A stretch of DNA of 64,000 bases, taken from the NCBI GenBank assembly GCA_965202585.1, contig OZ241828.1, forward strand, positions 17,608,001-17,672,000, given 5' to 3'. How positions within the stretch are numbered: the first letter of the stretch is position 1; each line of letters opens with the position of its first letter. Below, piece by piece: positions 6,513-64,000 of this stretch. The translations under genes were made by a program, and so were the position numbers. The notes beneath the pieces are model-generated. The model searched no databases. It had not been told where the DNA came from and saw only the letters and a list, made by a program, of their open reading frames with translations. Origin of the DNA: Thalia democratica. Taxonomy: Eukaryota.

Positions 6513-7606
6513 TATGAACTAGTTTACATATAAAGAACAACTGATTTTAATATTTACTTATACCAATTGCTATAAGGTATGTTTTTTCTTAGTTCTTATG
6601 ATCGAATACATTTTTAAATTTAAGTTTTAATTCTGTAGTAAAGTTATTTACATCATTTAAATACAACCTTGTTGCTTCGTTTATTAACGAAACTGTAAAA
6701 TTAAAAAAAAAAAATACAAAAAAAAAAGTGAGGCAGCTCTAGTAGATTTTATTTTACTTTATTAGAATTAAAGCTTTGTATTTTTTAAATTGAAGTTTTG
6801 TTGACAGTTATTTTAAGTAAATGATAAATTGTTGCAGTCAATTTCAGGTTGTCGGTCTGCCCACAGACAGTCAATCAGACCCAACTGAGACTTTTCATGT
6901 TTGCCGACTAACATCCATAGCTCACAATGTGTTAAACTAAAAACTCACAACTTGTAAAAACTGATTGATTATTTTTTATGTGGTATGTTAATTTTTGTTC
7001 AAATTTATATTTTTAGATATTTAGCTTATAATTACTTTTTTATAAGAAAAATAATTGAGATAACATTTATCCATTATCTTTTAAAAACAAAAACGAAAAT
7101 TACTGAAAAATATAACTTAAAGTCTTGGCTTTTGGACTGTATATTATATCGGCTAAAATCGACCGTTTTAATAAGATACAAGTTTAAGGGTAAGATAAGT
7201 CAAGAAAGTGCTTAGTGTTGTAAAAAGTTACGTCAAAAGTTTGTTTCTTTATTTAATAACATTTCAGCAAACAAATACGTACAGTTTAAATGTTTTGTTT
7301 GCAGTTCAAAAGTTTTTAAACTTTTTATATCATATATTAATATTAAAAACAGCAAACAGCTTGATGAGTAGTGATGACACGACAATAAAGGAATTGTTTT
7401 TTTATGGTTGATACTTATTTTTTCTTAAAATTTTTTCTTCAAATTACTACTCTTTGTATTAGCACTTATATATGCTAATTTTGTTAACTTCTTACACTTA
7501 AATAATGATTTATCCGCCACTAATGGCTGTAATAGTGCACCAAGTAGTAGGTTAAATGAAATGCTAAGTAGGTGGGGAAGTAGTGGTAACAAAACTTCGG
7601 CAACAA

Positions 7607-7760
7607 GTAGTCCAAGTAATTGAACTATTTGTAGTCCAAGTATTTGGGCAACCTGTAGTACAAGTAGTTGGGCAACCTGTTGTACAAGTAATTGAACTAT
7701 TTGTAGTCCAAGTAGTTGGAAACCTATAGTACAATTAATTGAACAACCTGTAGTCCAAGT
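7607..7760. repeat. 24-bp minisatellite (GTAGTCCAAGTARTTGRRCAACCT-like)
   Basis: Six full units plus a partial here, versus three plus a partial in the later units (e.g. 20259-20341). It underlies the 7425..7790 ORF. Confidence 0.85.
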
Positions 7761-7849
7761 AAATAAATGTTTAATAAAAATGTTGTACATTAAATTTTTT
7801 TTTAATTAAATAGATTTGAAATAATGACCAACCAAATTCAATAGGATTA

Positions 7850-8015
7850 TATAGGCTAGATCCGCATAGTAATTACTAATTGGGATACTGCCAGATCCGG
7901 ATCTAAAAAGGGATTATCATGCTTGATCCGGTATATTATTAATTTGAACAGCCCCGTCAAGGACTAATTTTATCTTGATTCAAACCGCCGATTAAAAACG
8001 TTGTCCACTTCTATA
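7850..8015. mobile_element. Decayed hAT-like MITE relic 3' of each kelch gene
   Basis: GATCCG/CGGATC motifs. The better-preserved paralogous copy at ~20675-20829 ends in TGCCCACCCCTA (reverse complement TAGGGGTGGGCA, a hAT-type TIR). Confidence 0.4.
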
Positions 8016-8130
8016 CTAAACTAAAAAATAAATTTTGTAATACCAGTAAATAAAGTTTAATAAACACTTAAACATTTCGACAAAACACTTTATCACTATA
8101 TGAACACACTTTTGCATACAAACAGATCTT

Positions 8131-9594
8131 TTATATCGATATGGTTTCTAAGAACCATGGCACCTTGACGCACGAAAACCTTTCTTTTGTTTGCGTGGTC
8201 GCGCAGGGTTTTTTCGACCATTCGCTCCCATCAACGTCGTAACAAGCAACGTACGGCTCTCCGCTTTGAAAAATTGCGATCACGCCTCCGAACGCCACCG
8301 CTCCGTGCACGGCCGTTTCCCACAGGTAAGGTGGCGATTTGATGGAAACGAAACTGCCGCCAACGTCGTCGAAAACCTCGCACTCTCCAGCTCCGTCCCC
8401 GAAAACATACAACTTTTGCCGCAAGGCCACCGTGTAGTGACGGCCCCTGCAGCGGATCATGCTCGGCATTGACAGCCACCTGTCGTTGGCGTGATCGTAA
8501 CGCTCCGCAAAGTTCAGCCTCTTGTGCTGCTGATTCATACCGCCGGTGACCACAACCGTTTCGTTGAGAAGCGAGCACGCCGTCACCGCCCTCGCGCCCA
8601 CATTCATGCCGGCCAGTTCTTTCCACTTGAAGCCGGCCGTGTCCAGTTGCAAGCAAGAGCCGTGGACGGGGTACGGATATTCTGGAGACCAGCCCCCGAA
8701 AGTTAAAATTTTGTTGGCAACGGCGCAAACGGAAAAGCTGTTGCGCGGGTCGAAGGCGTCTGCCACTTTCATCCACGTGTTGTTGGCTGGTGAGTACCTT
8801 TCAACGTACATTTCATAGTGCTCACAGCCATCTAAAACGTAAACTTCCCCTTCAATGCAAACTGCTTGGATATCATGTCGTTCTGCCAGCATGAAAGGAA
8901 GAGCTTCTGCGCTTTTAAAATTGCACAACTGGATGACATCTCTACAGTGTTCGACGGGTTTAAAACCAGAAAGATACTTTAAATCACCTAGAACTAGTAA
9001 GTTAGAACTTGCCTTATAAGAATAAAGGCTTATGCAATTGACTCTTAACTTATTACGAAAAAAAAATTTTTGATCATGCAACACATCTTTGAACACTGTA
9101 ATACCTTCATCAGTTTTGTAATACAATGAAGACTCACTGAAAAGTCTTTTTAAAACACCTTTTGGTAGTGAGTAAACACGAAGTTTTAACAAAAAGTTTT
9201 TGGCAAACTTCTCACGTTCCTTAATTTTGTAAGTTAACCAACTTTCGGCTGCATGAAGCACTTTAAGTTCTAACTTTGCAAGTAAACTGGAACTTGAAAG
9301 TAGTTTTACTAGAGAAATATATTACAGTTCTAGAAAACTAATAGTTCCAACTACCTAAGTAAAGCATTCTTCCATGAAATTGATGGAAAATTACGAAATT
9401 GTTTTTAAATTAAAAACTTCTGCTATTTTATACAACATAATTACATTTTTAGCAGAAAACTTTTCTTTTATTTTATCGCACCATTCTTTTTCACAACTCG
9501 TTGTGGTGTTAATACAAATCTGCTTCTGTTTAATATAAAACATAACACCATTTTCATCCAAATTATTACCTTTAAACGAAAGTTTAATTAACAT
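8131..9594 (-). pseudogene. Kelch-like (BACK + Kelch repeats) copy 1, pseudogene
   Basis: ATG at 9594 (MLIKLSFKGNNLDENGVMFY...). In-frame nonsense codons at 9391-9393 (TAA), 9355-9357 (TAG) and 9322-9324 (TAA), where other copies encode K, L, E. The 376-aa ORF-track entry starts at a GTG (Val). Confidence 0.85.
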
Positions 9595-10566
9595 ATCTGT
9601 TGTAAATTATAAACAAAATGATTTAAAACTCTCAAGTTAGTTTTTAGTTGCTGATAAAATTTAGATTATTTTACCATTTAACGTAAAAAGTAAGATTTTT
9701 TTAAACTTAATAACGTAAACTACTGATCATAGTTTTTTTGGACTTTGGCAAATTTTATGTGTGTTATCTTGCTTGAGACACAGAAACATATTTAAGTTCA
9801 ATAAAGAAAGTGTACTTTAAACATTTGTTGTTATAATATATTGAATAATATAAATGAATACTAGGTTATCGAAATTGAACTATTCAAATTACTTTTGAAC
9901 TAACTAAAATTTTATATTTTGAATTATTAGCTTAACTGTATGATTAAATCAAAATGTTTGAAAACAACTTTATTCTCCATTTTTCAATCCTTATGGAATT
10001 TAAAACTGTAACAGGATATCAACTTGATTACTGTTTAGATTTGGTTTGAAGTTTTGAGCTAAAAGTTAATTCAAGCGGTTAAGAGAAAGCTTGCAAATTA
10101 ATATTTTATTTACTTATATATTATATAAATTTATATAACAAATAAAATGATACTTAAGGCACTTTGTCATTTTTTAGCTATGACTGTTACTGGTTGTATG
10201 TTTTTTCTTTTGTTTATTATGTTTACCATTTCGTATTTTACGAGAGCTTGTTATGTGAAGTTTTACTAAAATTATGTGCTATAAAGTGAGTTTTATGTTT
10301 ATATAAATGAAACAAAAGTTGAGTTTGTCAGCTTATTATAATTTAATAGTTTGTTTTTCATTAGAAGAAATAGGTAAATTAGTAAAACAAATAAATGAAG
10401 TTTTTGGTAATTGAAAAGTAAAATTACAAACTATTTGTTTACTGTAGTTTGCATAGAAACAAAAAATGTTGTGAAAATTTAGAAAGAAATGCATTTGAAA
10501 GGGCATATTACGTAAGATGTATATTTTAAGAAAAAAAAATTTCGCTCAGTATTAGTGCTAAGCTTT

Positions 10567-10695
10567 TAGGGTGGAGGCGGGGACGTGGTGGTTACGGGAG
10601 AGCGACAGCGTGTGGTGAAGAACCCGTAAACTTTTTTAATTTTTTTTTTCTAAAGTCGATATGGTGCAATCTTGTGGGTTTGCGACACCTAGCGG
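10567..10695. promoter_or_regulatory. GC island, candidate promoter (unit 1)
   Basis: GC/CpG-rich patch in ~20% GC DNA. Sp1-like GGAGGCGGGG at 10573 and CTCF-like GCGACACCTAGCGG at 10682-10695. Lies between the divergently oriented kelch and plus-strand exons. Confidence 0.5.
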
Positions 10696-10798
10696 ATAAA
10701 AAAATTAGAAATTTAACTTTGATTTTTATTTAAAATAAACTAATTTCGCGATGTGTTTAAAAATCGTAATCAATTAGGCAGTTTTACAATTTTATTAG

Positions 10799-12258
10799 AA
10801 GTCAGAGCTTAAAAACCTCGGGAACTTCTTTAAGATAATGGAAAGATTTACGGTTTTATATTTAATTAAAGATTAACGTTATTATAATGAAGTAAAGTCT
10901 AAGTTTTAACAAGTTTTTTAAAGTCAACAAGTTAAACTGCATATATTATAAAATCTATGAAAAACTGTGAAAATTTATTAAATTTTATTGCTTTGATTTT
11001 AAGTAAATGAGCTATATTAAATTTATTTAAACTATAACAACATAAATAACAAGCTATTTAAAAACTAACATTAATTGAAGCAATTACAGCAAAAGCTAAA
11101 CTACAAAGTAAAATTTCATTTTTAAATGAACTAATTAATGTTTTTTTTTTAATTCGGATAAACTTAATAATAAATGCATATTTCTAAGTACAACATTTCT
11201 AAAACAGCACTCATTACAGCAGATAAATCAAGGTAATGGAGTACAATACAAAACCAGAAAAAGTGGGTTTGAATCTTTATGTTAAGCTTAAAGCCATGTG
11301 AAATTTTATATTTATTATCACGCTTCTTATACATAACTCGTAATTATTTGTCCTTTAAAGTTCAAATAATATTTTTGTTTGATAGTACGATTGTTATAAT
11401 TAACTTTAGCAAAATCGATCTAACACTTGTAAAAGGTTGCCGTACCCTCTACTTCACAAATGTATAACAAATAGTTTTTCTTGTAAACATTATTGTTGTT
11501 TTCTTTTTAAAGTTTGCAGTTTGTTTTAACACGCTTAAACGTATTTTAAAAAAGCTATACATAAAAGCTGTATCTTAAATTAAGAAAAGCTGTATAGAAA
11601 TTAGTAAAAGCTTAGAAGTAGAGCAACGAATAAAACTTATGAAAAGTTATTAACTCATGTTTGTTTGTTATTCAAAAAACGAGATTTTTAAGTAAATTTT
11701 CTGTCTATGTATGAACTCAAGTTAAATTTATTAAAAATTTTACAATAAAAATGATTTTTTTTTTCAAAGCTTATAAAAGTTTCAGTAATTCTTCCACTTT
11801 CATAAAATACTAACGTACAAAATTAAAGGTTCGTATTTAACTAAACATAAATTTTTTTGAATCAAACATTGTTTGTTTTTTCTCTGGTTGGAGTAAACTT
11901 TACATATAAATGCTTATAGTTCCTAAAACAGTAGTCATTACAGTCATAAAAGCAGATTAAGCGAGGCGATGGAGTAAAGTACCCACCAAGACAAAACGGG
12001 TCTGAATCTCGGCAAAAATTATATCAAGCTTAACTTTACATTAAATTTTTATTATAATTATCAGGCTTTTAATACATAATTTGTAACCACTTATCCTTTA
12101 TACTTTAAAATCGTGTTTCTTATTGATAATACAATTATTTCATGTAACTTTAGCCCGCGGAAAACTTTTTATATATTCTGCTCGCAACTCTTTCTAAAAA
12201 GAATGGCCTTTTACCTATAAAAGGTTGCCGTACCTTGTATTTTACTCGTGTTAAATAA
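10799..12258 (+). pseudogene. Cryptic spliced small gene, duplicated, A-type (frameshifted)
   Basis: Exon 10799-10852 (KSELKNLGNFFKIMERFT), an exon at ~11208-11280, and terminal codons GCRTLYFTNV* (11435-11467) and GCRTLYFTRVK* (12223-12258). Relative to B there is a 46-bp deletion in the first terminal exon and a +1 A in the second. Confidence 0.45.
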
Positions 12259-12637
12259 ATAGTCTATTTTCTAAATAGTATCTTTTTTTTTTATTATAAA
12301 ATGTATTATCTATGTCTGGTGTACTACCTGACAAAAAGCAAGTCGTGTTTGTTATGCGCAAATTATAAGTAGTTTATAAAAAATATCACAGTAAAGTAAT
12401 GTTCAAACAATGTATAAATAATAGAAATTAAAAGTAGAACGGATTTTACATTAAAGTGTGTATTTTGATTTTAAAATTAGCCGCAATAAAATAAACTAAA
12501 TATTAAATAAACTCTACTTAACAATTTATCTTTCAACTTGTCATAAGCAAAAAGCTAAATGTCTATTAATCGGATGTTTGAAATAGTAGCTATAGCCAGT
12601 TAACATAAGCTTTAATTCTTTTTGAAAAAGATTCATT

Positions 12638-12675
12638 TAAGCACTGACGATGTCTTTGACCGAAACTTAGTTTGT
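12638..12675 (+). ncRNA. Degenerate minimal type-I hammerhead ribozyme motif (Penelope-type), unit A
   Basis: CTGACGA-T-GTC-TTT-GAC-C-GAAAC-TTA-GT-T: core CUGANGA and GAAA, 3-bp stem II, minimal stem III, only a 3-bp stem I, followed by AAATAAAA. Confidence 0.55.
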
Positions 12676-14338
12676 AAAATAAAATCTTGAAAGAATAAAT
12701 TCATTATTTCTCCTATAGTAGCTAGTTAAGTGCTTTATCTAAACCCGAAATCGTTAAACTTAACATAATAATTCTAAAAGTTAAGTATTGAGTACACAGA
12801 GATTTTATAGAAACTAAATACCTATACAATAAAGATATCTTTAGACCCCAACTAACATTATACAAGAAAGTATTTTTGTAGTTTTTTGTGTACGCAGTAT
12901 ATGTGTTTAAAGTTGTTTCAATTTAGTTGAAAAATAACCGAAAGGCTTGCGTTAAATTTAAAATAATGAGCTGAAACAATTTTTTTATTAATTTAAATGA
13001 CACAAAAGTTTCGTTGTTAAAATTTGTTGGTATACTGTAACTTTCTACCAAAATTTATGTATAGTTTAGCAGTTTTAAATTCATCAAAGAGCTGCGTTTA
13101 AAGTTTTAAAAAAATATTTGGTATCCAGTTAAACTTCTCAATAACAGGTTCAGAATGATAAAGTAGATAATTTCTACTTATTTAAGCTATAATTTTCAGC
13201 TTCAAGCTGAGTAATAATTAAATTGTATTTTATCGCGTTCATGTGATTTCTTTAGCAAGTTTCTTACTTTTGTAAGTTTATTATATAACCTCTAACTTAT
13301 TTTGATAATATACTGCATTGACAAAAGTAAAAATATACAAAATACAACCAGGCTTGGTAGAAACAATTTCCAGCAAAGTTTGCCATAAAAAGTGTCATTC
13401 GACTTTAGAACAAGTTTATTTCATTTATACTGTAAAAATCAGATTTCATTACATAAAATTAGTAGCTTTTAACTTCCCGAAACACGACATTGTTAGAGTG
13501 AAAACTTGCAGTAGCTAATAACTCGTACTTTAACAGTGTTTATTTTACCAAAATTTAGTTTTAAAATAGGATATTTTAGTGATAGCTGCAGCCCGCAGCA
13601 ATCTTATTCTTTATAAAGTGCAGCCCGTGAATAACTCAACATAGAAAAATGACTATTTAATTGTCAAGTCTGCCAATTTAACTGATAATGAAATGCTGTA
13701 GCTACATAACTTTTAATTGAAATTAACACAAATTTATTTTTTTAGGAAAAATTGTTATAAATAAATTTTTGTTATGTTTTCACACCAGAGCCCTACAGTG
13801 TTATTTGACGTGAGAACCTAAACAAATCACATTATATTTTAATAACATGTTCATAAACAAGCACGAAGAAATTTGCAAAGCAGGTCCTTTTTTAAATACA
13901 TACATGGACAGCAAAATATTTCAGTTTAAACGCCGTTGATCAAGAAAACAAAAATTTTTTTAGAACCTTAACTACGTTCGTAAAATCTACCCTTCAGTAA
14001 TGATATTAACAACTGCAAGACTACCATGATAAAAAAAACTAGTACATACTAATTATCTCGTTAAATATAATTAACCGAATTATGCTTATTAAACGTCTTG
14101 GTCTTTACCCTTTTCGTGTTCGATGCATTAACAACTTTTTATAACAACTTCAGTAAGGGACTATTTCTTATCAGAATTATGCAGTGCACAATAATTGTAA
14201 ATACAAAAACATTTAAATTGATTTTTGAACTTTTGTAACCTTATGTAATTCTGTAACTTTATTTTAGATAAAAAACAGTTTATAACAGAACACAATTTAT
14301 TTAATACACGAAAAAAACATAATATTTGAAGATTGCAT

Positions 14339-17300
14339 TCATTCCACGTTTTTCACACGTCCAACGTCAGCAACAAGTGAAGACAATCGGAAAGACCTGT
14401 AAGAATAATATACAATTAATAAAACGGAAAAATTATTGATGCTTTTTAAACTAAAAATTGGTAATATTTCATTTAATAATTAAAACATATTAGTGAACAG
14501 ATGCCGTGAAAAGTGGCTGAAACTCAATATAAACGTAACATGTAATAAAAATGCATCCTTCAAACTTGTAGCTTTTGCAGTCAAAACAACAGTTTATTAA
14601 CAATTTACAAATAAAAAAATGCAAGCAAGCAATACAAACTAAATAAATTTATCAATTTTAATAATTAAACGTGTTCAAAGTTTTGATAAAATCATATAAC
14701 TTAGCTATTAAATACCACAAAGAAATAAATTATAGTTCTGTGAAACAAAATAGCTTCCACAGCTTCAAACTTTTTAATAACCTCTATTTCACAAGTACTA
14801 TATTTTAGTCTCTTTAAAATTAATTGTAGACTTGTAACAAAAATTATAGTAAAACAATCAAAAAACATACAAGTTTAAAATGTTAGCTACAAATTCTAAA
14901 TGTTATTGAAAAATAACACCAGCTTTTTAATTTGACTTAAGTAAGTTTATCTCAAAGCTTATAAAATTTATACATATGTAAACAACAAATAAATAAAGAC
15001 GTTTGAATGATTAAAATTAACAACACTTTTTTTTACTTTTAACAAGTTTGATTGAGCAATGCTTACAAATTTTCTTTACAAAAGATAATAAATACTCAAA
15101 AAATAAATTAATAGAACAAAAATTCGAGTAAATTTGAGAAAAATAATTATAATAGCAATCGAAACAAACGATATAAAATTTATAAATTATAAAATCTAAA
15201 TAAGATAATTAGAAGGAGCATAGACTATTTAAAAGCTTTGTTTTTCAATCATAGTTGTCACAACTGTTATTAAATTTAGTAAATAAAAATTTATTTACAT
15301 TAAAACAGATTAAAATATTATAATAAATTGGACAAAATAAAATGAGAAAATACTGCACTATTTGTTGGTCTAGTAATTTAAACAAATGTAATTTTAATAG
15401 CTCTCAAATTTGCTATGATACACCGCTAAGTTAAACATTTTATTTAATTTTGGTTAAATTAATAAATACATATTTTTTCTTATGTTCAAAATAAACAGTC
15501 GATTTATAAATCAAATTCAAAACTCTATTTAACTATATAAAACACCAAGCACTAAAGAAACACTTTGGATTTATTTAAAAAATTTCAGTATCAGATTATT
15601 TTTTCTATATGTTGAACAAAACAGTTTTTAAATTATTTGTAATTGTAATTACTTACTTATTGTTACACTTTGCATAATTAATGAGATTTAGTGACAGAGA
15701 GGACCACCGGTTCCGCATCAGTGATTTGTCATCGGTGAACCAATTCAAGACACTGAAAAAAAATTATAAATATTACAATTCATAGAGTTGATTTAAACTG
15801 GTATTAAATATTTAGTTAAGCATTTTATTTAAACACAATAGGTATATAGAATATGTAAAAATTTGTGGCCACATTGTTAAATATTAAGCATGTTCCATCA
15901 CAATTATCATTGTTTTCTTATGATTTCTTAATAAGATAACTAGCAAACTAAATTTCAATAAATTTCTTTAAAAATATAAAAACTAAGTATAATGTGCAAC
16001 AGTTGTATGAAAAATGTTAGCAGGAATAATTAAAACGACATATTCTGTAAAAAAAGTTTCGGAGGTTATTGTTCTGATAAGTTCAAATTTGTCAGTAAAC
16101 TGAACTGTATAATTATTTCTTGACATACAGATTAAAATGTCAAGTTGACTAAAAGGTTTGTAGTTTGTTGTAGATGAAAAGTTTATAGAAGTTCAAATGA
16201 CCAGTTTGTAGAGAGCATATTTATTTTTTATAAACTTTGTAAATTGAAACTGTGAAAAACACTCTTGAAAGTATTAATGATTATAAATAACTAATTTTTG
16301 TACTAATATGTACTAACTAATATGTACTATGATTACTTAATTTAAACTACTGATATGAAAACACACTGTTCAAATATTACTTACATTTCAGGCCACCTGT
16401 ATTGAACAATAAATTTTACTACTATTTTTTATGCTTTACTACACCACTATACATATTAAACACAACATTATAAGATACTAAGTTTTACAACTACTATATT
16501 TTAGTCTCTTTAAACTTAATTGTAGATTTGTATACAGTATATACAAGTTAACATGTAATAAAAAAGCATCCAACAAACTTGTAGCTTTTGCAGTCAAAAC
16601 TACAGTTTGATAAAAATTGACAAAAAATTAAATGCAAGCAAGCAATACAAACTAAATATATTTATTAATTTTAATAATTATATGTGTTTAAAGTTTAATT
16701 AAAATCATACAACTTATAAATAAAGACGTTTGAATGATTTAAATTACCATTTTATTGAAATTAACAACACTTTTTATTTTTAACAAGTTTGTTTGAGCAA
16801 TGCTTACAAATCTTAACTAACTTATTTTCCTTTCAAAAGATGATAAATACTCACATAATTAATTTACCAAACAAAAATTCGAGTTTAAATTATTAAAATA
16901 GAAATCAAAACAAACAAATGAAATTAATCAATTATCAAACCTAAATAAGATATTAGAAGGAGCATACACTATTTAAAAGCTTTATTTTTTAATCATAGTT
17001 GTTGCAACTGCTAATAACTTTTTCTCTACTAAATTTTAGTACATTAAAACAGTTTATTATATTATAATAAATTTGACAAAATTAACATTGCTCAATATGA
17101 GAAAATACTGCACTATTTGTTGGTTTAGTAAGTTATACATATGTAACTTTAATAGTTATCAAGTTTGCTATGATAGACCGCTTAGATAAACATTTTACTT
17201 TACTTTGATAATATCAATAAAAACATCTTTTTTCTTATGTTTAAAATAAACAGTAAATTTATAAACCAAAACTCTATTTAACCATAAAAAAAAACCCCAA

Positions 17301-18904
17301 GCACTAAAGAAACACTTTGAATTTATTAAAAAAATTTCAGTATCAGATTATTTTCTATAAGTTGAACAAAACAGTTTTTAAATTATTTGTAATTGTAAAT
17401 ACTTACTTATTGTTTCACTTTGCATAGTCAATGAGATTTAGTGACAGAGAGGTCCACCGGTCAGTGATTTGTCATGGTCAGTGATCAAATTTAAGAACAG
17501 AAACTGAAAAAAAAAAAAAAAGTTATAAATAATATAATACATAAAGTTGATTTAAACTGGTATTTTTATTAAAATAGTCATGTGTGTGCATGTCTAACAA
17601 CTTAAGTAAAGTACACACAACTGTTATGCTAACAGACATTATAAATTTGTTTAAAAAATCATAAAAATATTACTTTTAATAAATGTGTTTTACTCATTAT
17701 AAATACAAACAAGTTGGTTTACATTAAAAATAATTCTCATAGTATAAAAACAACATTGCCACTCTATAAAACAAAAAACTATCCTTAGTGACCTTGTACA
17801 GTCTTAAGTCATCCTGTGCTTTTTTTCAAATCATATTAAAAATCTTAATTTAATTGAAATAAACTTTTCAAATCAATATGAATCATGTTTTAAAATAAAA
17901 CAGGTTATAAAATATCAAAACATTGTTACTGGACCAACTTTATCTGTATCAAGATCTAGAAAAAAAAATAGCCTAAGACTTTTAAAAACATAAAACTATT
18001 TTGAGTTGTCCTTACTCAACCTTAGTTAGATTTAAAAAATTTAAACTCTGCTGAACAATATTGAGTATTTTGAATGTATGGCAAGCATGATACAAAATAC
18101 TTATAAACTTTTGGTAAAAATGAAAAGTATTAATAATTTGATCTATTTTTACAACATTACACTTATATAAAGATAAAATGTTTTAAGAGAAAGTGTTGCT
18201 TAAGAAAAAATTAATTTTATATATTTAGATATATAAATGTAAAAGTACTGGGTGTAAGGGACTGGGATGGGGGCTTATAAATTTATATGCTCATCTGTTT
18301 ACCAGAGGTCTTAACTACTTTATCTACTTTATAGATAGCTGATGTATCAATTAAATGTTATTTGTCATCAGTCACCTAAAGGTTAGAATTTTTTTCTATA
18401 CCCTTAATAGGTTTTAACCAAAACGCTTTGTAAAATTTTAGCATGGGTGGCATACTTTCAGAAAAAAAGAATAGTTTAAGTTTGTGTATCAGGTTAAACC
18501 TTTTTTAAAAACTTGTAAATAGTTATATAAAATAGTTATTTACTGCTATGATCAAATTATATGTTAATGAAACTAAAGCTTTTAGCTTTTGTGTTTTACC
18601 AGGTAAAATGTATTATACTGTTATCTTAATCTTCAAATTACATACATGGTTTGTCTTATAGTATGGCTCTGTTTGATATATAAGAGTTGAACAACTCTAA
18701 GTTGTAGATAATAATACTATCATTGAAATATACTCACCACTGTACTATACCAAAAACTTGCAGAAATAAATTTATTGGGTGGATTATATAAGAAGATATT
18801 CTTGTAAACAAACTTTCAAAACACTAGGTGCTTATTTCTTTTTTTAAGTATTCGCTGTTCAAATACTAGTCATATCACTTACAACAGTATTGAGTATTGA
18901 CATT
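14339..18904 (-). pseudogene. Multi-exon minus-strand locus with microexon, unit A
   Basis: Exons with AG/GT boundaries and matching phases: 18904-18883, 18800-18738, 18375-18303, 17955-17922, 16396-16385, 15752-15657, 14396-14339. One in-frame TAA in the 73-nt exon. Confidence 0.5.
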
Positions 18905-23365: not shown

Positions 23366-23495
23366 TAGGGTGGAGGCGGGGACGTGGTGGTTACGGGAGA
23401 GCGACAGCGTGTGGTGAAGAACCCGTAAACTTTTTTAATTTTTTTTTTTCTAAAGTCGATATGGTGCAATCTTGTGGGTTTGCGACACCTAGCGG
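23366..23495. promoter_or_regulatory. GC island, candidate promoter (unit 2)
   Basis: Essentially identical to 10567-10695. Confidence 0.5.
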
Positions 23496-49812: not shown

Positions 49813-49942
49813 TAGGGTGGAGGCGGGGACGTGGTGGTTACGGGAGAGCGACAGCGTGTGGTGAAGAACCCGTAAACTTTTTTAATTTTTTTTTTTCTAA
49901 AGTCGATATGGTGCAATCTTGTGGGTTTGCGACACCTAGCGG
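49813..49942. promoter_or_regulatory. GC island, candidate promoter (unit 4)
   Basis: Copy of 23366-23495. Confidence 0.5.
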
Positions 49943-50045
49943 ATAAAAAAATTAGAAATTTAACTTTGATTTTTATTTAAAATAAACTAATTTCGCGATG
50001 TGTTTAAAATTCGTAATCAATTAGGCAGTTTTACAATTTTTTTAG

Positions 50046-51926: not shown

Positions 51927-51964
51927 TAAGCACTGACGATGTCTTTGACCGAAACTTAGTTTGT
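51927..51964 (+). ncRNA. Degenerate hammerhead motif, unit B'
   Basis: Same sequence as 12638-12675. Confidence 0.55.
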
Positions 51965-53653
51965 AAAATAAAATCTTGAAAGAATAAATTCATTATTTCT
52001 CCTATAGTAGCTAGTTAAGTGCTTTATCTGAACTCGAAATCGGTAAACTTAACATAATAATTCTAAAAGTTAAGTATTGAGTACACAGAGATTTTATAGA
52101 AACTAAATACCTATACAATAAAGATATCTTTAGACCCCAACTAACATTATACAAGAAAGTATTTTTGTAGTTTTTTGTGTACGCAAAAACGTATATGTGT
52201 TTAAAGTTGTTTCAATTTAGTTGAAAAATAACCGAAAGGCTTGCGTTAAGTTTAAAATAACGAGCTGAAACAATTTTTTTATTAATTAAAATGACACAAA
52301 AGTTTCGTTGTTAAAATTTGTTGGTATACTGTAACTTTCTACCAAAATTTATGTATAGTTTAGCAGTTTTAAATTAATCAAAGAGCTGCGTTTAAAGTTT
52401 TAAAAAAATATTTGGTATCCAGTTAAACTTCTCAATAACAGGTTCAGAATGATTAAGTAAAAACTAATAGATAATTTCTACTTATTTAAGCTATAATTTT
52501 CAGCTTCAAGCTGGGTAATAATTAAATTGTATTTTATCGCGTTCATGTGATTTCTTTAGCAAGTTTCTTACTTTTATAAGTTTATTATATAACCTCTAAC
52601 TTATTTTGATAATATACTGCATTGACAAAAGTAAAAATATACAAAATACAACCAGGCTTGGTAGAAACAATTTCCAGCAAAGTTGCCATAAAAAGTGTCA
52701 TTCGACTTTAGAACAAGTTAATTTCATTTATACTGTAGAAATCAGATTTCATTATATAAAATTAGTAGCTTTTAACTTCCCAAGTTGCCAAAACACGACA
52801 TTGTTAGAGTGAAAACTTGCAGTAGCTAATAACTCGTACTTTAATAGTGTTTATTCTACCAAAATTTAGTTTTAAAATAGGATATTTTAGTGATAGCTGC
52901 AGCCTGCAGTAATCTTATTCTTTATAAAGTGCAGCCCGTGAATAACTCAACATAGAAAAATGACTCTTTAATTGTCAAGTCTGCCAATTTAACTGATAAG
53001 GAAATGCTGTAGCTACATAACTTTTAATTGAAATTAACACAAATTTAGTTTTTTTAGGAAAAATTCGTAATAAATTTTTGTTAGGTTTTCACACCAGAGC
53101 CCTACAGTGTTATTTGACGTGAGAACCTAAACAAATCACAATATATTTTAATAACATGTTCATAGTTTATAAACAAGCACGAAGAAATTTGCAAAGCAGG
53201 TCCTTTTTTAAATACATACATGGACAGCAAAATATTTCAGTTTAAACGCCGTTGATCAAGAAAACAATAATTTTTTTGGAACCTTAACTACGTTCGTAAA
53301 ATCTACCCTTCAGTCATGATATTAACAACTGCAAGACTACCATGATGAAAAAACTAGTACATACTAATTATCTCGTTAAATATAATTAACCGAATTATGC
53401 TTATTAAACGTCTTGGTCTTTACCCTTTTTTTGTTCGATGCATATTCAACTTTTTATAACAACTTTAGTAAGGGGCTATTTCTTATCAGAATTATGCAGT
53501 GCACAAATAATTGTAAATACAAAACATTTAAATTGATTTTTCAACTTTTGTAACCTTATATTATTCTGTAACTTTATTTTAGATAAAAAACAATTTATAA
53601 CAGAACACAATTTATTTAATACACAAAAAAAACATAATACTTGAAGATTGCAT

Positions 53654-56600
53654 TCATTCCATGTTTTTCACACGTCCAACGTCAGCAACAAATGAAGACA
53701 ATCGGAAAGACCTGTAAGAATAATATACAATTAATAAAACGGAAAAATTATTGATGCTTTTTAAACTAAAAATTAGTAATATTTCATTTAATAATTAAAA
53801 CACATTAGTGAACAGATGCCGTGAAAAGTGGCTAAAACTCAAACGTCAACGTAACATATAATAAAAATGCATCCTTCAAACTTGTAGCTTTTGCAGTCAA
53901 AACAACAGTTTATTAACAATTTACAAATAAAAAAATGCAAGCAAGCAATACAAACTAAATAAATTTATCAATTTTAATAATTAAACGTGTTCAAAGTTTA
54001 GATAAAATCATATAACTTAGCTATTAAATACCACAAAGAAATAAATTATAGTTCTGTGAAACAAAATAGCTTCCACAGCTTCAAACTTTTTAATAACCTC
54101 TATTTCACAAGTACTATATTTTAGTCTCTTTAAAATTAATTTTAGACTAGTAACAAAAATTATAGTAAAACAATAAAAAAACATACAAGTTTAAAATGTT
54201 AGCTACAAATTCTAAATGTTATTGAAAAATAACACCAGCTTTTTAATTTGACTTAAATCAGTTTATCTTAAAACTTATAAAATTTATACAAATGTAAACA
54301 ACAAATAAATAAAGACGTTTGAATGATTAAAATTACCAACACTTTTTTTACTTTTAACAAGTTTGATTGAGCAATGCTTACAAATCTTAAATAACTTATT
54401 TTCTTTACAAAAGATAATAAGTACTCAAAAAATAAATTAATAAAACAAAAATTCGAGTAAATTTGAAAAAATAATTATAACAGCAATCGAAACAAACGAT
54501 ATAAAATTTATAAATTATAAAATCTAAATAAGATAATTAGAAGGAGCATAGACTATTTAAAAGCTTTTTTTTTCAATCATAGTTGTCACAACTGTTATTA
54601 AATTTAGTAAATAAAAATTTATTTACATTAAAACAGATTAAAATATTATAATAAATTGGACAAAATAAAATGAGAAAATACTGCACTATTTGTTGGTCTA
54701 GTAATTTAAACAAATGTAATTTAATAACTCTCAAATTTGCTATGATACACCGCTAAGATAAACATTTTATTTAATTTTGGTTAAGTTAATAAATACATAT
54801 TTTTTCTTTTTTTCAAAATAAACAGTCGATTTATAAATCAAAACTCTATTTAACTATATAAAACACCAAGCACTAAAGAAACACTTTGGATTTATTTAAA
54901 AAATTTCAGTATCAGATTATTTTTTCTATACGTTCAACAAAACAGGTTTTTAATTATTTGTAATTGTAATTACTTACTTATTGTTCCACTTCGCACAATT
55001 TATGAGATTTAGTGACAGAGAGGTCCACTGGTTCCGCATCAAGTGATTTGGCATCGGTGAACCAATTCAAGACACTGAAAAAAAATTATAAATATTACAA
55101 TTCATAGAGTTGATTTAAACTGGTATTAAATATTTAGTAAAGCATTTTATTTATACACAATAGATATATAGAATATGTAAAAATTTGTGGCCACATTGTT
55201 AAATATTAAGCATGTTCCATCACAATTGTCATTGTTTTCTTATGATTTCTTAATAAGATAACTAGCAAACTAAATTTCAATAAATTTCTTTAAAAATATA
55301 AAAACTAAGTATAATGTGCAACAGTTGTATGAAAAATGTTAGCAGGAATAATTAAAACGACATATTCTGTAAAAAAAGTTTTGAGGTTATTGTTCTGATA
55401 AGTTCAAATTTCTTAGTAAACTGAACTGTATACAGTAACCTCTCGCTTATTTACGCACATTGTGTCCACAGAAAAAGTGCGTAAAGATATGAAGGATCGT
55501 AAAGATACGAGAGGTATCAAATATACTTACTATAATGGCTGTTTTTTTATATTGCTTCTGGTTAAAAGCAGACTGGAGACTTTCCCATTTTTAACTATTT
55601 GTTTACTTTATTTATAAATATGAAAACAAAAGATAGAAATATACTTATATTTAAAAAAGGAAATTAAATTTTTATAAAACAATAGTACTTTTAAGGTTAT
55701 AATCCAATTTTAAATAAATAACACTTGTAGAAAAATTCTACTAATTTTAATAACAAGTAGATTTTATCTTTATATTTATTCATATGTGACTAGTTTTAAT
55801 ACTTAACATTTTATATTCTGTTCTACTTAGCAAATTCAATTTATAATTGAGCATTGTTTACAATTAAGAAATGCTGTGGTGTTTATATTAAAATGTGCTT
55901 ATATAACCTTATAGAAAAATATGCATTTGGTGCTATAATAGATTTCTTCTTTTGAATATTAGTATATAAAGAATAAGAAAAATGTTTAATAAAAATTGTT
56001 TGTTTTACAACAATTTTTTTTTAATTTGACCTTTGTCAACAAAAGGATAAACTTGTCTTGCATGGAGTGCACTTTTTGCTAAGAAGTTTCATTTAATTTC
56101 ATTTTTTGATGTTTATTCATATAAAGGGCAAGAGTGCTGTATTATTTATCTGTGTCTTAAACTCTTATTATTCGAGTTTACTTTCATTATTTGACAAAGT
56201 CATATTTCTTACAGAATTTTAATTTAATCTCTTATTGTTAACAACATTTCTGATATACTGAGGTATAACTAGATGTTTATCAACTTAGTAAAGGAACATA
56301 AGTTTACAAAGTCTAAAGATATATAGAGGTGAGTTAGCATTTAAAAATATACAATAAACCTAACTTCAGCAATATTAAAAAAAAAAAGATCTTTTTAGAA
56401 TTCTAAAATGCGTAACTAAACGAGAGTGCGTAACGTCACGAGTGCGTAAAGATCCGAGAGGTTACTGTAATTATTTCTTGACATTCAGATTAAAATGTCA
56501 AGTTGACTAAAAGCTTTGTAGATTGTTGTAGATGAAAAGTTTATAGAAGTTCAAATGACCAATTTTTAGAGAGCATATTTTTCTTTTATAAACTTTGTAA

Positions 56601-59240
56601 ATTGAAACTGTGAAAAACACTCTTAAAACTATTATTAATTTTAAACAACTAATTTTGTAATATGTACTATGATTACTTAATTTAAACTACTGATATGAAA
56701 ACACACTGTTCAAATATTACTTACATTTCAGGCCACCTGTATTGAACAATAAATTTTACTACTATTTTTTATGCTTTACTACACCACTATACATATTAAA
56801 CACAACATTATAAGATACTAAGTTTTACAAGTACTATATTTTAGTCTCTTTAAACTTAATTGTAGATTTGTATACAATATATACAAGTTAACATGTAATA
56901 AAAAAGCATCCAACAAACTTGTAGCTTTTGCAGTCAAAACTACAGTTTGATAAAAATTGACAAAAAATTAAATGCAAGCAAGCAATACAAACTAAATAAA
57001 TTTATTAACTATAATAATTATATGTGTTTAAAGTTTAAATAAAATCATATAACTTATAAATAAAGACGTTTGAATGATTTAAATTACCATTTTATTGAAA
57101 TTAACAACACTTTTTACTTTTAACAAGTTTGTTTGAGCAATGCTTACAAATCTTAACTAACTTATTTTCCTTTCAAAAGATGATAAATACTCACATAATT
57201 AATTTACCAAACAAAAATTCGAGTTTAAATTATTAAAATAGAAATCAAAACAAACAAATGAAATTAATCAATTATCAAACCTAAATAAGATATTAGAAGG
57301 AGCATACACTATTTAAAAGCTTTATTTTTTAATCATAGTTGTTGCAACTGCTAATAACTTTTTCTCTACTAAATTTAAGTACATTAAAACAGTTTAATAT
57401 ATTATAATAAATTTGACAAAATTTACATTGCTCAATATGAGAAATTACTGCAATATTTGTTGGTTTAGTAAGTTAATCATATGTAACTTTAATAGTTATC
57501 AAGTTTGCTATGATAGACCGCTAAAATAAACATTTTATTTAATTTTGGTTAAATTAATAAATACATATTTTTCCTTATGTTCAAAATAAACAGTCGATTT
57601 ATAAATCAAAACTCTATTTAACTATATAAAACCCCAAGCACTAAAGAAACACTTTGGATTTATTACAAAAATTTCAGTATCAGATTATTTTTTCTATATG
57701 TTCAACAAAACAGTTTTTAAATTATTTGTAGTTGTAAATACTTACTTATTGTTTCACTTAGCATAATCAATGAGATTTAGTGACAGAGAGGTCCACATCA
57801 GTGATTTGTCATGGTCAATGATTTAATTTAAGAACAGAAACTGAAAAAAAAACAAAGTTATAAATAATATAATACATAAAGTTGATTTAAACTGGTATTT
57901 TTATTAAAATAGTCATGTGTGTGCATGTCTAACAACTTAAGTAAAGTACACACAACTGTTTTGCAAACAGACATTATAAATTTGTATAAAAAAACATAAA
58001 AATATTACTTTTAATAAATGTGTTTTATTCATTATAAATACAAACAAGTTGGTTTACATTAAAAATAATTCTCATAGTATAAAAACAACATTGCCACTCT
58101 ATAAAACAAAAAACTATCCTTAGTGACCTTGTACAGTCTTAAGTCATCCTGTGCTTTTTTTCAAATCATATTAAAAATCTTAATTTAATTGAAATAAACT
58201 TTTCAAATCAATATAAATCATGTTTTAAAATAAAACAGGTTATAAAATATCAAAACATTGTTACTGGACCAACTTTATCTGTATCAAGATCTAGAAAAAA
58301 ACTAGCCTAAGACTTTTAAAAACATAAAACTATTTTGAGTTGTCCTTACTCAACCTTAGTTAGATTTAAAAAATTTAAACTCTGCTGAACAATATTGAGT
58401 ATTTTGAATGTATGGCAAGCATGATACAAAATACTTATAAACTTTTGGTAAAAATGAAAAGTATTCTTAATTTGATCTATTTTTATAACATTACACTTAT
58501 ATAAAGATAAAATGTTTTAAGAACAAGTGTTGCTTAAGAAAAAATTAATTCTATATATTTAGATATATAAATGTAAAAGTACTGGGTGTAAGGGACTGGG
58601 GTGGGGGCTTATAAATTTATATGTTCATCTGTTTACCAGAGGTCTTAATCACTTTATCTACTTTATAGATAGCTGATGTATCAATTAAATGTTATTTGTC
58701 ATCAGTCACCTAAAGGTTAGAATTTTTTCTATACCCTTAATAGGTTTTAACCAAAACGCTTTGTTGAAATTTTAGCATGGGTGCCATACTTTCAGAAAAA
58801 AAGAATAGTTTAAGTTTGTGTATCAGGTTAAAACTTTTTTTAAAAACTTGTAAATAGTTATATAAAATAGTTATTTACTGCTATGATCAAATTATATGTT
58901 AATGAAACTAAAGCTTTTAGCTTTTGTGTTTTACGAGGTAAAATGTATTATACTGTTATCTTAATCTTCAAATTACATACATGGTTTGTCTTATAGTATG
59001 GCTCTGTTTGATATATAAGAGTTAAACAACTCTAAGTTGTAGTTAATAATACTATAATTGAAATATACTCACCACTGTACTATACCAAAAACTTGCAGAA
59101 ATAAATTTATTGGGTGGATTGTATAAGAAGATATTCTTGTAAACAAACTTTCAAAACACTAGGTGCTTATTTCGTTTTAATAAGTATTCGCTGTTCAAAT
59201 ACTAGTCATATCACTTACAACAGTATTGAGTATTGACATT
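53654..59240 (-). pseudogene. Multi-exon minus-strand locus, unit B'
   Basis: 27207-32793 shifted by 26,447. Confidence 0.5.
55433..56467. mobile_element. pogo/Tigger-like non-autonomous element, second HOR copy
   Basis: Same TIRs and TA TSD as 28986-30020. Confidence 0.92.
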
Positions 59241-61041
59241 CTATATGAAAAATATTAACTTTTTTTATAACCGATAAATATCAATATGTACGGAACCCAA
59301 TTTACAAATTAATTAAAAAAAAAAAACGTTTAAAATAACCAATCTATACAATTAAAAATCAAAAAAATTAAATTCTTGCAATATTCACAAATTTAAACAT
59401 ACTATCAAAAAATTACAAAATGTTAAATTTGACTAATAAAACTAGGTTTTAATAAAAACATTTTTAATAGATTTCTTTATAAAAATTGTTACAACAGAAG
59501 TATTTATTTTTACATCTATAAAACTCGCACAAATAAACGTTTTAGAACGTTTGTATAATGTTTCAATTTTTTTTTTTAAATAGAGTAGTTTTATCCGTGA
59601 AAAACTATGTGGATGAAAGTTAAACTTCAAAACAGGAAAAGAAAGCAGTTACTAGTTAATGTTATATTTACCAGACCCAAAAAGTACAGAAAAACAAGTT
59701 TAATATTTTTTTGTTTAACAATACATATGGTTGAAAAAGTTTAATTTTTGCTTCAGAATTTAAAGAATATTAAAATTTATTTTTGGAATTTTTACATAAC
59801 AGTTTATACCATGTATTTTTAAATTTAAAAGCGTCAATAAACCTAAACAAGTTAAAACGTCTTATTTTTGTATTGTATGTCTATAAAAATAAACAGTAGT
59901 TAAGTTGGTGTCTATTGTTAATGTTATTTTAGTTTATAAACTTTTCAGTTGTTGGTTTTATAAGTATGCATGTAAAACCGCGGTTATTTTTCTTAATGAT
60001 TTTTGTAAAAAAAATATCTTTAAAACTTAACTTTTATCAATACTTGTGCAAATGATATAAAAACTCCAAACTTAAATATTAAATTAATTCAATAACTGCT
60101 TACTTAGATGCTTTAAACAGCTTTCTTATGATATGATTATGATTTACTAAACTTAAGTAAAAGAAAAAAAATGTAGCATAATAAAGTTAAATAAGCATTT
60201 GTAAGCAAATTTTAAAATTTTTCTAGTAACTAATATTGTTTCAAACAAAAAAGTTTATGTAAAAAAAAAAATTACAAAACAAATAGTAAAAACTTTTTTA
60301 ACTTTTTATATCATATATCAATATAAAACACAGCAAACAGCTTGATGAGTAGTGATGACACGACAATAAAGGAATTGCTTATTTATGGTTGATACTCATT
60401 TTTTCTTAAAAGTTTTATCTTCAATTTACTACTCTTTGTATTAGCACTTATACATGCTACCTTTTGTTAACTTCTTACACTTAAATAATGATTTAGCCGC
60501 CACTAATAGCTGTAATAGTGCACCAGGTAGTAGGTTAAATGAAATGCTAAGTAGGTGGGGAAGTAGTGGTCACAAAACTTCGGCAACAAGTAGTCCAAGT
60601 AATTGAACTATTTGTAGTCCAAGTAGTTGGACAACCTGTAGTACAATTAATTGAACAACCTGTAGTCCAAGTAAATAAATGTTAAATAAAAATGGTGTAC
60701 ATTAATTTTTTTTTCATACAAATAGATTTGAAATAATGACCAACAAAATTCAATAGGATTATATCGGCTAGATCCGCATAGTAATTACTAATTGGGATAC
60801 TGCCAGATCCAGATATAAAAAGGGATTATCATGCTTGATCCGGTATATTATTAATTTGAACAGCCCCGTCAAGGACTAGTTTTATCTTGAATCGAACCGC
60901 CGATTAAAAACGTTGTCCACTTTTATACTAAACTAAAAAGAAATTTTGTAGTACTAGTAAATAAAGTTTAATAAACACTTAAACATTTCGACAAAACACT
61001 TTATTACTATATGAACACACTTTTGCATACAAACAGATCTT

Positions 61042-62349
61042 TTATATCGATATGGTTTCTAAGAACCATGGCACCTTGACGCACGAAAACCTTTCTTTTG
61101 TTTGCGTGGTCGCGCAGGGTTTTTTCGACCATTCGCTCCCATCAACGTCGTAACAAGCAACGTACGGCTCTCCGCTTTGAAAAATTGCGATCACGCCTCC
61201 GAACGCCACCGCTCCGTGCACGGTCGTTTCCCACAGGTAAGGCGGCGATTTGATAGAAACGAAACTGCCGCCAACGTCGTCGAAAACCTCGCACTCTCCC
61301 GCTCCGTCCCCGAAAACATACAACTTTTGCCGCAAGGCCACCGTGTAGTGACGGCCCCTGCAGCGGATCATGCTCGGCATTGCCAGCCACTTGTCGTTGG
61401 CGTGATCGTAACGCTCCGCCCAGTTCAGCCTCTTGTGCTGCTGATCCATACCGCCGGTGACCACCACCGTTCCGTTGAAAAGCGCGCACGCTGTCACTGC
61501 CCTCGCGCCCACCTTCATTTCGGCCAGCTCTTTCCACTCGAAGCCGGCCGTGTCCAGTTGCAAGCAAGAGCCGTGGACGGGGTACGGATATTCGGGAGAC
61601 CAGCCCCCGAAAGTTAAAATTTTGTTGGCAACGGCGCAAACGGAAAAGCTGTGGCGCGCGTCGAAGGCGTCTGCCACTTTCGTCCACGTGTTGTTGGCTG
61701 GTGAGTACCTTTCAACGTACATTTCATAGTGCTCACAGCCATCTAAAACGTAAACTTCCCCTTCAATGCAAACTGCTTGGATATCATGTCGTTCTGCCAG
61801 CATGGGGGGAAGAGCTTCTGCGCTTTTAAAATCGCACAACTGGATGACATCTCTGCAGTATTCGACGGGTTTAAAACCAGAGAGATACTTCAAATCTCCT
61901 AGAATTAGTAAGTTAGAACTTGCCCTATAAGAATAAAGGCTAATGCAATTGACTCCTAACTTATTACGAAAAAAAAGTTTTTGATCATGCAACACATCTT
62001 TGAACACTGTAATACCTTCATCAGTTTTGTAATACAATGAAGACTCACTGAAAAGTCTTTTTAAAACACCTTTTGGTAGTGAGTAAACACGTAGTTTTAA
62101 CAAAAGGTTTTTGGCAAACTTACCACGTTCCTTAATTTTGTAAGTTAGCCAACTTTCGGCTGCACGAAGCACTTTAAGTTCTAACTTTGCAAGTAAACTG
62201 GAACTTGAAAGTAGTTTTACTACAGAAATATATTTTAGTTCTAGAAAACTTATAGTTGCAACTACCAAAGTAAAGCACTCTTCCATGAAATTGATGGAAA
62301 ATTTCGAAATTGTTTTTAAATCAAAAACTTCTGCTAATTTATACAACAT
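61042..62349 (-). CDS. Kelch-like protein copy 5, 435 aa
   Basis: HOR twin of copy 3 with E>K, A>T and G>S differences. Same upstream TAA. Confidence 0.7.
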   Translation of the reverse strand: MLYKLAEVFDLKTISKFSINFMEECFTLVVATISFLELKYISVVKLLSSSSLLAKLELKVLRAAESWLTYKIKERGKFAKNLLLKLRVYSLPKGVLKRLFSESSLYYKTDEGITVFKDVLHDQKLFFRNKLGVNCISLYSYRASSNLLILGDLKYLSGFKPVEYCRDVIQLCDFKSAEALPPMLAERHDIQAVCIEGEVYVLDGCEHYEMYVERYSPANNTWTKVADAFDARHSFSVCAVANKILTFGGWSPEYPYPVHGSCLQLDTAGFEWKELAEMKVGARAVTACALFNGTVVVTGGMDQQHKRLNWAERYDHANDKWLAMPSMIRCRGRHYTVALRQKLYVFGDGAGECEVFDDVGGSFVSIKSPPYLWETTVHGAVAFGGVIAIFQSGEPYVACYDVDGSEWSKKPCATTQTKERFSCVKVPWFLETISI

Positions 62350-63460
62350 AATTACATTTTTAGCAGAAAATTTTTAATTTATTTTATTGTACCATTCTCT
62401 TTCACAACTCGTTGTGGTGTTAATAAAAATCTTCTTCTGTTTAATATAAAACATAACTCCATTTTTACCCTAATTATTACCTTTAAAAGAAAGTTTGATT
62501 AACATACTTTTTGTAAATTATAAACAAATTGATTTAAAACTCTCAAGTTAGTTTTTAGTTGCTGATAGAATTTAGGTTATTTTACTATTTAACGTAAAAA
62601 GTAAGATCTTTTTAAACTTAATAACGTATACTACTGATCATAGTTTTTTTGGACTTTGGCAAATTTTATGTGTGTTATCTTGCTTGAGACACAGAAACAT
62701 ATTTAAGTTCAATAAAGAAAGTGTACTGTAAACATTTGTTGTTATTATATATTGAATAATATAAATGAATACTAGGTTATCGAAATTGAACTATTCAAAT
62801 TACTTTTGAACTAATTTAAATTTTATATTTTAAATTATTAGCTTAACTGTATGATTAAATCAAAATATTTGAAAACAACTTTATTCTCCATTTTTCAATC
62901 CTTATGGAATTTAAAACTGTAACAGGATATCAACTTGATTACTGTTTAGATTTGGTTTGAAGTTTTGAGCTAAAAGTTAATTCAAGCGGTTAAGAGAAAG
63001 CTTGCAAATTAATATTTTATTTACTTATATATTATATAAATTTATATATCAAATAAAATAATACTTAGGGCACTTTGTCATTTTTTAGCTGTGACTGTTA
63101 CTGGTTGTATGTATTTCCTTTTGTTTATTATGTTTACCATTTCGTATTTTACGAGAGCTTGTTATGTGAAGTTTCACTAAAATTATGTGCTATAAAGTAA
63201 GTTATATGTTTATATAAATGAATAGCTTATTATAATTTGATAGTTTGTTTTTCATTAGAAGAAATAGGTAAATTAGTTAAACAAATAAATGAAGTTTAAA
63301 GTAATTGAAAAGTAAAATTACAAACTATTTGTTTACTGTAGTTTGCATAGAAACAAAAAATGTTGTGAAAATTTAGAAAGAAATGCATTTGAAAGGGCAT
63401 ATTACGTAAGATGTATATTTTAAGAAAAAAAAATTTCGCTCAGTATTAGTGCTAAGCTTT

Positions 63461-63590
63461 TAGGGTGGAGGCGGGGACGTGGTGGTTACGGGAGAGCGAC
63501 AGCGTGTGGTGAAAAACCCGTAAACTTTTTTAATATTTTTTTTTCTAAAGTCGATATGGTGCAATCTTGTGGATTTGCGACACCTAGCGG
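63461..63590. promoter_or_regulatory. GC island, candidate promoter (unit 5)
   Basis: Copy of 37013-37142. Confidence 0.5.
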
Positions 63591-64000
63591 ATAAAAAAAT
63601 TAGAAATTTAACTTTGATTTTTATTTAAAATAAACTAATTTCGCGATGTGTTTAAAAATCGTAATCAATTAGGCAGTTTTACAATTTTTTTAGAAGTCAG
63701 AGCTTAAAAACCTCGGGAACTTCTTTAAGATAATGGAAAGATTTACGGTTTTATATTTAATTAAAGATTAACGTTATTATAATGAAGTAAAGTCTAAGTT
63801 TTAACAAGTTTTTTAAAGTCAACAAGTTAAACTGCATATATTATAAAATCTATGAAAAACTGTGAAAATTTATTAAATTTTATTGCTTTGATTTTAAGTA
63901 AATGAGCTATATTAAATTTATTTAAACTATAACAACATAAATAACAAGCTATTTAAAAACTAACATTAATTGAAGCAATTACAGCAAAAGCTAAACTACA

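Follow-up and report, generated by a model that had tools for sequence, protein, structure and literature searches.

A gene-carrying macrosatellite of 21 Kelch units in Thalia democratica and its probable origin in one founding rearrangement

Array and unit anatomy

The 64,000-nucleotide stretch of Thalia democratica DNA that we analysed (the window; positions 17,608,001-17,672,000 of contig OZ241828.1, here C4) contains the beginning of a tandem array in which every unit carries a Kelch gene. The window has a G+C content of 27% and no runs of N. We took the array region of C4 whole and cut it into units. In the assembly, the array has 21 head-to-tail units (U01 to U21) and spans 276 kb (C4:17,615,309-17,891,304). 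Only 4.3 of the 21 units fall inside the window, and a further 16 lie beyond its end. The Kelch open reading frame (ORF) is found in 21 tandem copies, from C4:17,616,131 to 17,890,852, and in one inverted copy at C4:18,324,520. With many head-to-tail units of more than 1 kb, the array is a macrosatellite.

Each unit has two parts, a gene segment (K) and a non-coding block (E). Set against the array flanks and the inverted locus, the unit has only K as its native part, about 2.6-2.9 kb that comprise the gene, 453 bp on its upstream side and about 1 kb on its downstream side. The junctions between the two parts are identical in all units: J1 lies at positions 7309, 19959, 33842, 46406 and 60290 of the window, and J2 at 9996, 22812, 36459, 49259 and 62907. 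E runs from J2 to the next J1 and comes in a short form (S; 9.95 kb) and a long form (L; 11.03 kb). It is absent from both array flanks and from the inverted locus.

Within the window, the gene segments are on the minus strand. The left flank (1-7308) is paralogous to the inverted locus (C4:18.326-18.331 Mb) over positions 1-3546 and 6513-7308, and an insertion resembling a long terminal repeat (LTR) element lies between these (3547-6517). The edge gene segment, K1 (7309-9996), has a Kelch pseudogene (ORF 8131-9543). It is followed by the S-form block E1 (9997-19958), whose first ~1 kb is 3.6% diverged and which from about position 11000 is homogenised with other S units (~0.1%). K2 (19959-22812; L form) has an intact BACK-Kelch ORF of 470 amino acids (aa) at 20947-22359. 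In the L-form block E2 (22813-33841; 11,029 bp), the first ~100 bp match the terminus of a dispersed repeat and the remainder is 90-95% identical to blocks on another contig, C5. K3 (33842-36459; S form) has an ORF at 34594-36006 with TAA at codon 27, which leaves a 435-aa ORF from Met36 (34594-35901). The next block, E3 (36460-46405; S form, 9,946 bp), is followed by K4 (46406-49259; L form), with an intact 470-aa ORF at 47394-48806. E4 (49260-60289) is an L-form block. K5 (60290-62907; S form) has an ORF at 61042-62454, again with TAA at codon 27 and a 435-aa ORF (61042-62349), and E5 (62908-64000) is cut by the window end.

S-form units (~12.6 kb) and L-form units (~13.9 kb) alternate as a 26,447-bp dimer. 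Across the array, the spacing of units is alternately 12.80 and 13.65 kb, and units are 12.8-13.9 kb long, apart from a single 20.5-kb unit that owes its length to an insertion. There are three irregular spacings: U12 (13,886 bp), U18 (20,533 bp) and an adjacency of two L units, U19-U20. When the window is compared to itself with BLAST, a 29.9-kb match with 99.4% identity appears at an offset of 26,463/26,447 bp, and adjacent units are 94.9-96.2% identical with many gaps. In a MAFFT alignment of all units, S and L differ by 2.2-2.3% substitutions and ~1,440 indel columns (1.44 kb), while units of the same form are 0.10-0.34% apart (0.11% for U02/U04 and 0.17% for U03/U05, the same-form pairs within the window). 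With multimer copies just 0.1-0.3% apart, as against 2.2-2.3% plus 1.44 kb of indels between monomers, this is a higher-order repeat. The original prediction, made from the sequence of the window, had described a 26.4-kb two-unit higher-order repeat whose alternating spacers differ by several percent plus indels, and both points are borne out. It had also counted, non-exhaustively, 8-10 differences per 11 kb between like units, and the full alignment gives about 13.

Altogether, 230 diagnostic substitutions sort the units cleanly into S or L, and the S-L alternation is strict over 18 units. The exceptions at these sites are U12 (L, then S), U20 (an S gene with an L block) and patches of one to three sites.

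The left end of the array differs from the rest. Along the long self-match, the count is 36-48 differences per kb between 7668 and about 11000 and then falls to 0-4 per kb between 11000 and 37552. This jump implies that the young repeat begins within the first unit and not at the left end of U01. The young repeat does not include the array's initial 3.7 kb (7309 to ~11000), which are 3.6-4.8% diverged from their counterpart. The repeat had been predicted to start at 7316. This is indeed the left junction of the array (7309-7319), but the stretch from 7309 to ~11000 has to be taken out of the recent amplification.

The Kelch gene

The gene is an intronless ORF of 470 aa that encodes a BACK domain and a six-blade Kelch propeller and has no BTB domain. 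In Pfam searches, BACK (PF07707) is found at residues 35-134 (E = 5.5e-14) and Kelch (PF01344) with E = 2.8e-24. An AlphaFold (AF2) model has a mean predicted local distance difference test score (pLDDT) of 74.6. It is helical over residues 15-160 and has a propeller at 181-461, mostly with pLDDT of 75-93. In Foldseek comparisons, KBTBD2 matches the model across both BACK and Kelch (473-498 aligned columns, with template modelling (TM) scores of 0.41-0.49), and the propeller matches the Kelch domains of KEAP1 and of KLHL2/3/12/17/20 (E ~1e-17, target TM ~0.8).

This arrangement resembles the BTB-BACK-Kelch adaptors of cullin-3 (KLHL, KBTBD and KEAP1 proteins), in which a helical BACK domain also precedes a six-blade Kelch propeller. 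In those adaptors, the BTB domain docks the protein on cullin-3 and also mediates dimerisation. Unlike them, the array gene has no BTB domain in its ORF, unit, flanks or paralogous locus, and its best outside relative is only 31% identical. Pfam found no BTB domain in any ORF. We considered an upstream BTB exon as well, but tblastn with six BTB-bearing relatives found none in the units, the flanks or the inverted locus. So the prediction that a Kelch gene is co-amplified in each unit holds, but its description as a BTB/BACK-Kelch adaptor does not.

The closest outside proteins, from metagenome contigs, are 26-31% identical. Of these, P0001 and P0002, which are full-length, have nearly the same N-terminal start as the Kelch ORF (P0003 is a shorter fragment), and the paralogues in the genome likewise begin at about the same place. 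A first look at the genome gave 2,532-5,180 candidates for the intronless BACK-Kelch family. Among the 150 scored matches to an N-terminal query, all with E < 1e-16, 128 are outside the array (the rest being the 21 array copies and the inverted paralogue), and most of these have open frames of 460-500 aa. About 60% of the paralogue matches contained one TAA, which might have been a recoded or conserved stop. We rejected this, since the TAA is the paralogues' own terminal stop, which is read through where the alignment reaches query residue 465 or beyond. Literature searches found no published report of this Kelch family or of the array. The BTB-less Kelch proteins most likely act as stand-alone binding modules.

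Other sets of BACK-Kelch paralogues, nearly identical to one another, occur at regular spacings of tens of kb at C8:11.80-11.93 Mb, C33:14-151 kb and C10:9.53-9.56 Mb, suggesting that these are further amplified arrays of the family.

Ten of the 21 ORF copies in the array are intact (470 aa). The ORF of U01 is interrupted three times (stops at codons 51, 63 and 74) and differs from the core copies by 4.6%, and that of U21 is frameshifted. The inverted copy has an intact ORF. Between the array and the inverted copy, the ratio of non-synonymous to synonymous substitution rates (dN/dS) is 0.26-0.35, which indicates past purifying selection.

Within the unit, G+C is high in one stretch only, namely the last (3') 900 bp of the Kelch ORF, with G+C of 57-62%, up to 80% G+C at third codon positions and a CpG observed/expected ratio of 1.25-1.66. 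This is what had been taken for a separate GC island. Its composition resembles that of a CpG island (20947-21850, and likewise in each unit), confined to the propeller-coding part, in a genome of 25% G+C. Polarised changes in this stretch comprise 30 strong-to-weak and 6 weak-to-strong changes. This excess implies that the stretch is decaying towards A+T and is not being built, and for recent lineages it rejects the idea that the island results from GC-biased gene conversion that is still under way.

Diversity within each form also peaks in this part of the gene. In the last 500 bp of the ORF, nucleotide diversity (Pi) reaches 1.44% among L units and 0.86% among S units, as compared to ~0.15% elsewhere. 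The variants in the peak are shared mosaically between S and L, and they include 12 synonymous and 12 non-synonymous changes (a ratio of non-synonymous to synonymous polymorphism, pN/pS, of ~0.3). We read this peak as short-tract gene conversion that shuffles old S/L differences, rather than as selection for diversity. Diversifying selection on the variable part of the propeller is unsupported, given the 12 synonymous and 12 non-synonymous variants.

Origin and amplification

The state of this region before amplification is preserved 0.43 Mb away. At C4:18,314,009-18,341,482, in inverted orientation, the right flank, one gene and the left flank follow in order, with 90-96% identity to the array region. 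Because this locus has both flanks and a single gene, and lacks both E and the LTR-like insertion, it represents the unamplified state.

The polarity of the two forms is given by a transposon. The main indel between S and L is a 1,035-bp element (28986-30020, with a second copy at 55433-56467 in the window) that has perfect 13-bp terminal inverted repeats beginning with CAGT and is flanked by a TA target duplication. Eleven array units carry a copy, and 95% identical copies are found on C8, C2 and C5. In S units (including E3), the target is uninterrupted (empty sites at 16110/16111 and 42557/42558). With its terminal repeats, TA duplication, dispersed copies and empty site, the element is a miniature inverted-repeat transposable element (MITE) of Tc1/mariner type. 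An inserted element with its TA duplication in L and an empty site in S means that L was derived from S.

The copies at the edges of the array are old. In U01, K and the first kb of E are 3.6-4.8% from the core, the ORF of U21 is 3.3% from the core, and both edge ORFs are broken. These old copies imply that the event that created the K-E-K arrangement is about as old as the inverted duplication. The core is young. Within each form, variants are mostly private to one unit, and outside the ORF there are ~20 pairwise differences per 11.5 kb irrespective of the distance between units. Together, these observations indicate a star-like genealogy and hence one short burst of dimer amplification. The original prediction, in which the monomers split earlier and the dimer was amplified very recently, agrees with the 2.3% versus 0.1-0.3% divergence, the star-like genealogy and the polarity of the MITE.

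E contains no ORF of at least 70 aa, no recognised transposase, Rep or reverse transcriptase, and no rise in G+C except for one weak spot. The two cryptic spliced loci that had been placed in each unit fall in this block, with neither such an ORF nor a G+C rise nor a family match, and are unsupported. A ribozyme-like motif had been proposed as well, but Rfam gave no match at gathering scores in the whole window (the best hits in 23001-36500 had E values of 0.32 and 0.6, to unrelated families). E opens, precisely at J2, with ~100 bp that form the terminus of a dispersed repeat. This repeat occurs at many loci in both orientations, and no matching inverted terminus is found inside E. At the other end, homology to other copies of E stops at J1, where the unit's own sequence turns from E to K, so J1 does not define a natural terminus of E.

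Relatives of E are found elsewhere in the genome: at least 17 copies with 90-95% identity, spaced 14.3-22 kb apart, at C5:79.418-79.712 Mb, and solitary copies at C5:20.09 Mb, at C4:0.38 Mb and on contig C309. The C5 locus (C5:79,418,000-79,712,000) is a second macrosatellite, with at least 17 units at spacings of 14.3-22 kb, each made of a ~9.85-kb E block (90-95%) and ~4.5 kb of other sequence. In a search of the genome for the RING domain (Pfam), no locus at C5:79 Mb was among the best 150 of 2,849 candidates. Within our array, E also includes, twice per unit and ~790 bp apart, a frame that reads GCRTLYFT (11435-11460, 12223-12250 and their counterparts), which runs into a stop within 2-3 codons both times. 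The frame seems to reflect a local duplication of DNA in E rather than a protein gene.

We think that the locus is probably a gene-carrying macrosatellite, a 21-unit, 276-kb array that descends from one founding rearrangement and was then expanded by a burst of amplification of the S+L dimer. That J1 and J2 are identical in every unit shows that there was a single founding event, in which a foreign 10-kb non-coding block (E) came to lie between two copies of the 2.6-kb K and one gene became K-E-K. J2 falls precisely on one end of a dispersed repeat. The event was probably associated with a transposon. The cluster would then have stayed small while adjacent units diverged by 2.3% and one of them gained the MITE and became the L form. 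Later, a single short burst of out-of-register (unequal) recombination or of replication-based re-copying would have multiplied the S+L dimer about nine-fold. Nothing outside the array could replace the outermost gene copies, so these would have avoided homogenisation and decayed. Single crossovers after the burst probably produced the hybrid units U12 and U20, and a foldback element would have inserted into U18. Short-tract gene conversion would have shuffled S and L alleles only in the GC-rich 3' third of the ORF. The insertion in U18 is a private 7.7-kb palindrome of foldback type (C4:17,850,280-17,858,000), with long inverted arms that are 95.8% identical, tandem subrepeats of ~217 bp and a ~12-bp duplication. 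Amplification would act mainly by raising the dosage of these putatively expressed genes, in slightly different copies.

Several points weigh against this account. Nine of the 21 ORF copies have TAA at codon 27 and are left with a 435-aa ORF from Met36 (two of these, U14 and U20, share a 1-nt insertion near codon 443). With these stops, and a within-array pN/pS of ~0.3 on few variants, the amplified genes may be heading for decay. There is also a weak hint of a four-unit super-period (52.9-kb steps), with 3-5 shared variants per pair and only a slight dip in pairwise differences. E may have passed from C5 to C4 or in the reverse direction. The public runs that match words sampled from the sequence are contig-level only, with no RNA dataset among them. 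Finally, the copy number of the array is that of the assembly. It could be asked whether the array was over-expanded in assembly, or whether S and L represent the two haplotypes of a shorter array, joined alternately into one. T. democratica is a wild marine animal whose heterozygosity could reach a few percent, similar to the S/L divergence, and two runs of the probable source organism (X1 and X2) contain a fraction of only 0.42-0.46 of the sampled words. But the strict alternation, the substitutions private to single units, the two recombinant units, the 7.7-kb insertion in just one unit and the diverged pseudogenes at the edges all indicate a real array that was resolved, rather than duplicated haplotigs. 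Contigs from marine metagenomes (8 studies) contain 5-17% of the words, as expected for multi-copy sequence from an organism at low coverage. An assembly artefact is very improbable.

Two other explanations accept the array as real and differ as to what drove it. E might be the active agent, a previously undescribed 10-kb module, prone to amplification or mobile, that seeds macrosatellites and carries along whichever gene is adjacent. Two arrays, on separate chromosomes and with different cargo, do contain E (next to the Kelch gene here and to other sequence at C5:79.4-79.7 Mb), it also occurs alone at three places, and on its left it ends in a transposon terminus that falls exactly on J2. However, E has no long ORF, no matching inverted terminus and no recognisable transposase, Rep or reverse transcriptase, the end of homology at J1 marks no natural terminus, and a one-off templated insertion explains the data equally well. 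We think it unlikely that E is the agent. Alternatively, the amplification might have been driven by selection for a diverse repertoire for recognition (in immunity, in allorecognition or against parasites), which might also keep the copies different. There are 17 distinct proteins among 19 translated ORFs (reported as 17 array copies, including U01 with its three stops, and the inverted paralogue), their diversity is concentrated in the C-terminal blades of the propeller, and the family of similar intronless genes is very large. Nevertheless, the variable region has as many synonymous as non-synonymous variants (12:12, pN/pS ~0.3), the variants are old S/L differences shuffled by conversion and not new changes, and nearly half of the copies have an early stop. 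An adaptive expansion is doubtful to about the same degree, and the link to an arms race drawn in the original prediction is unsupported. A founding rearrangement followed by a burst of dimer amplification remains our preferred explanation.

Related arrays and minor features

Macrosatellites that carry genes are known from vertebrates (the D4Z4/DUX4, RS447/USP17, REXO1L1, CT47 and TAF11L arrays). As in those arrays, the units here are on the kb scale, have one intronless ORF each and are repeated head to tail tens of times with very high identity and diverged edges. In contrast to them, the unit is larger (12.6-13.9 kb), the array is a higher-order repeat of two monomers, and four-fifths of the unit is a foreign non-coding block that it has in common with another array. 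The array can also be compared to the higher-order repeats of centromeric alpha satellite, where monomers are likewise percents apart, copies of the multimer are ~0.1% apart, the edges are more diverged and out-of-register hybrid units occur. But here the monomers are ~13 kb and not 171 bp, they contain a protein-coding gene and they are only 2.3% apart. (No role at a centromere is implied.)

As it stands, the array adds another tandemly amplified member to a very large family of BTB-less Kelch genes with a putative function, and it is a clean but fairly ordinary case of recent gene amplification. What sets it apart is how legible its history is: it has a "before" locus, one founding junction, forms polarised by a MITE, a burst-like genealogy and decayed edges. 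Gene conversion appears to be confined to the GC-rich coding part, and the rest of the unit evolves as two clean lineages. If E were a shared vehicle, it could point to a mechanism behind the many genic macrosatellites of 14-18 kb in this genome.

Two minor features of the region are repeats that lie outside the E block. The LTR-like insertion in the left flank has terminal repeats of ~500 bp, and its interior includes a GC-rich 42-bp minisatellite (5472-5894, 10 copies). This element is absent from the inverted paralogous locus and has dozens of copies across the genome at 94-98% identity. Just downstream of each Kelch gene, ~300 bp inside J1, there is also a 24-bp minisatellite (7599-7762, 20259-20343, 34142-34226, 46706-46790 and 60590-60674), which is repeated 6.5 times in the edge unit and 3.5 times in all others. 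The same minisatellite is present at the inverted locus.

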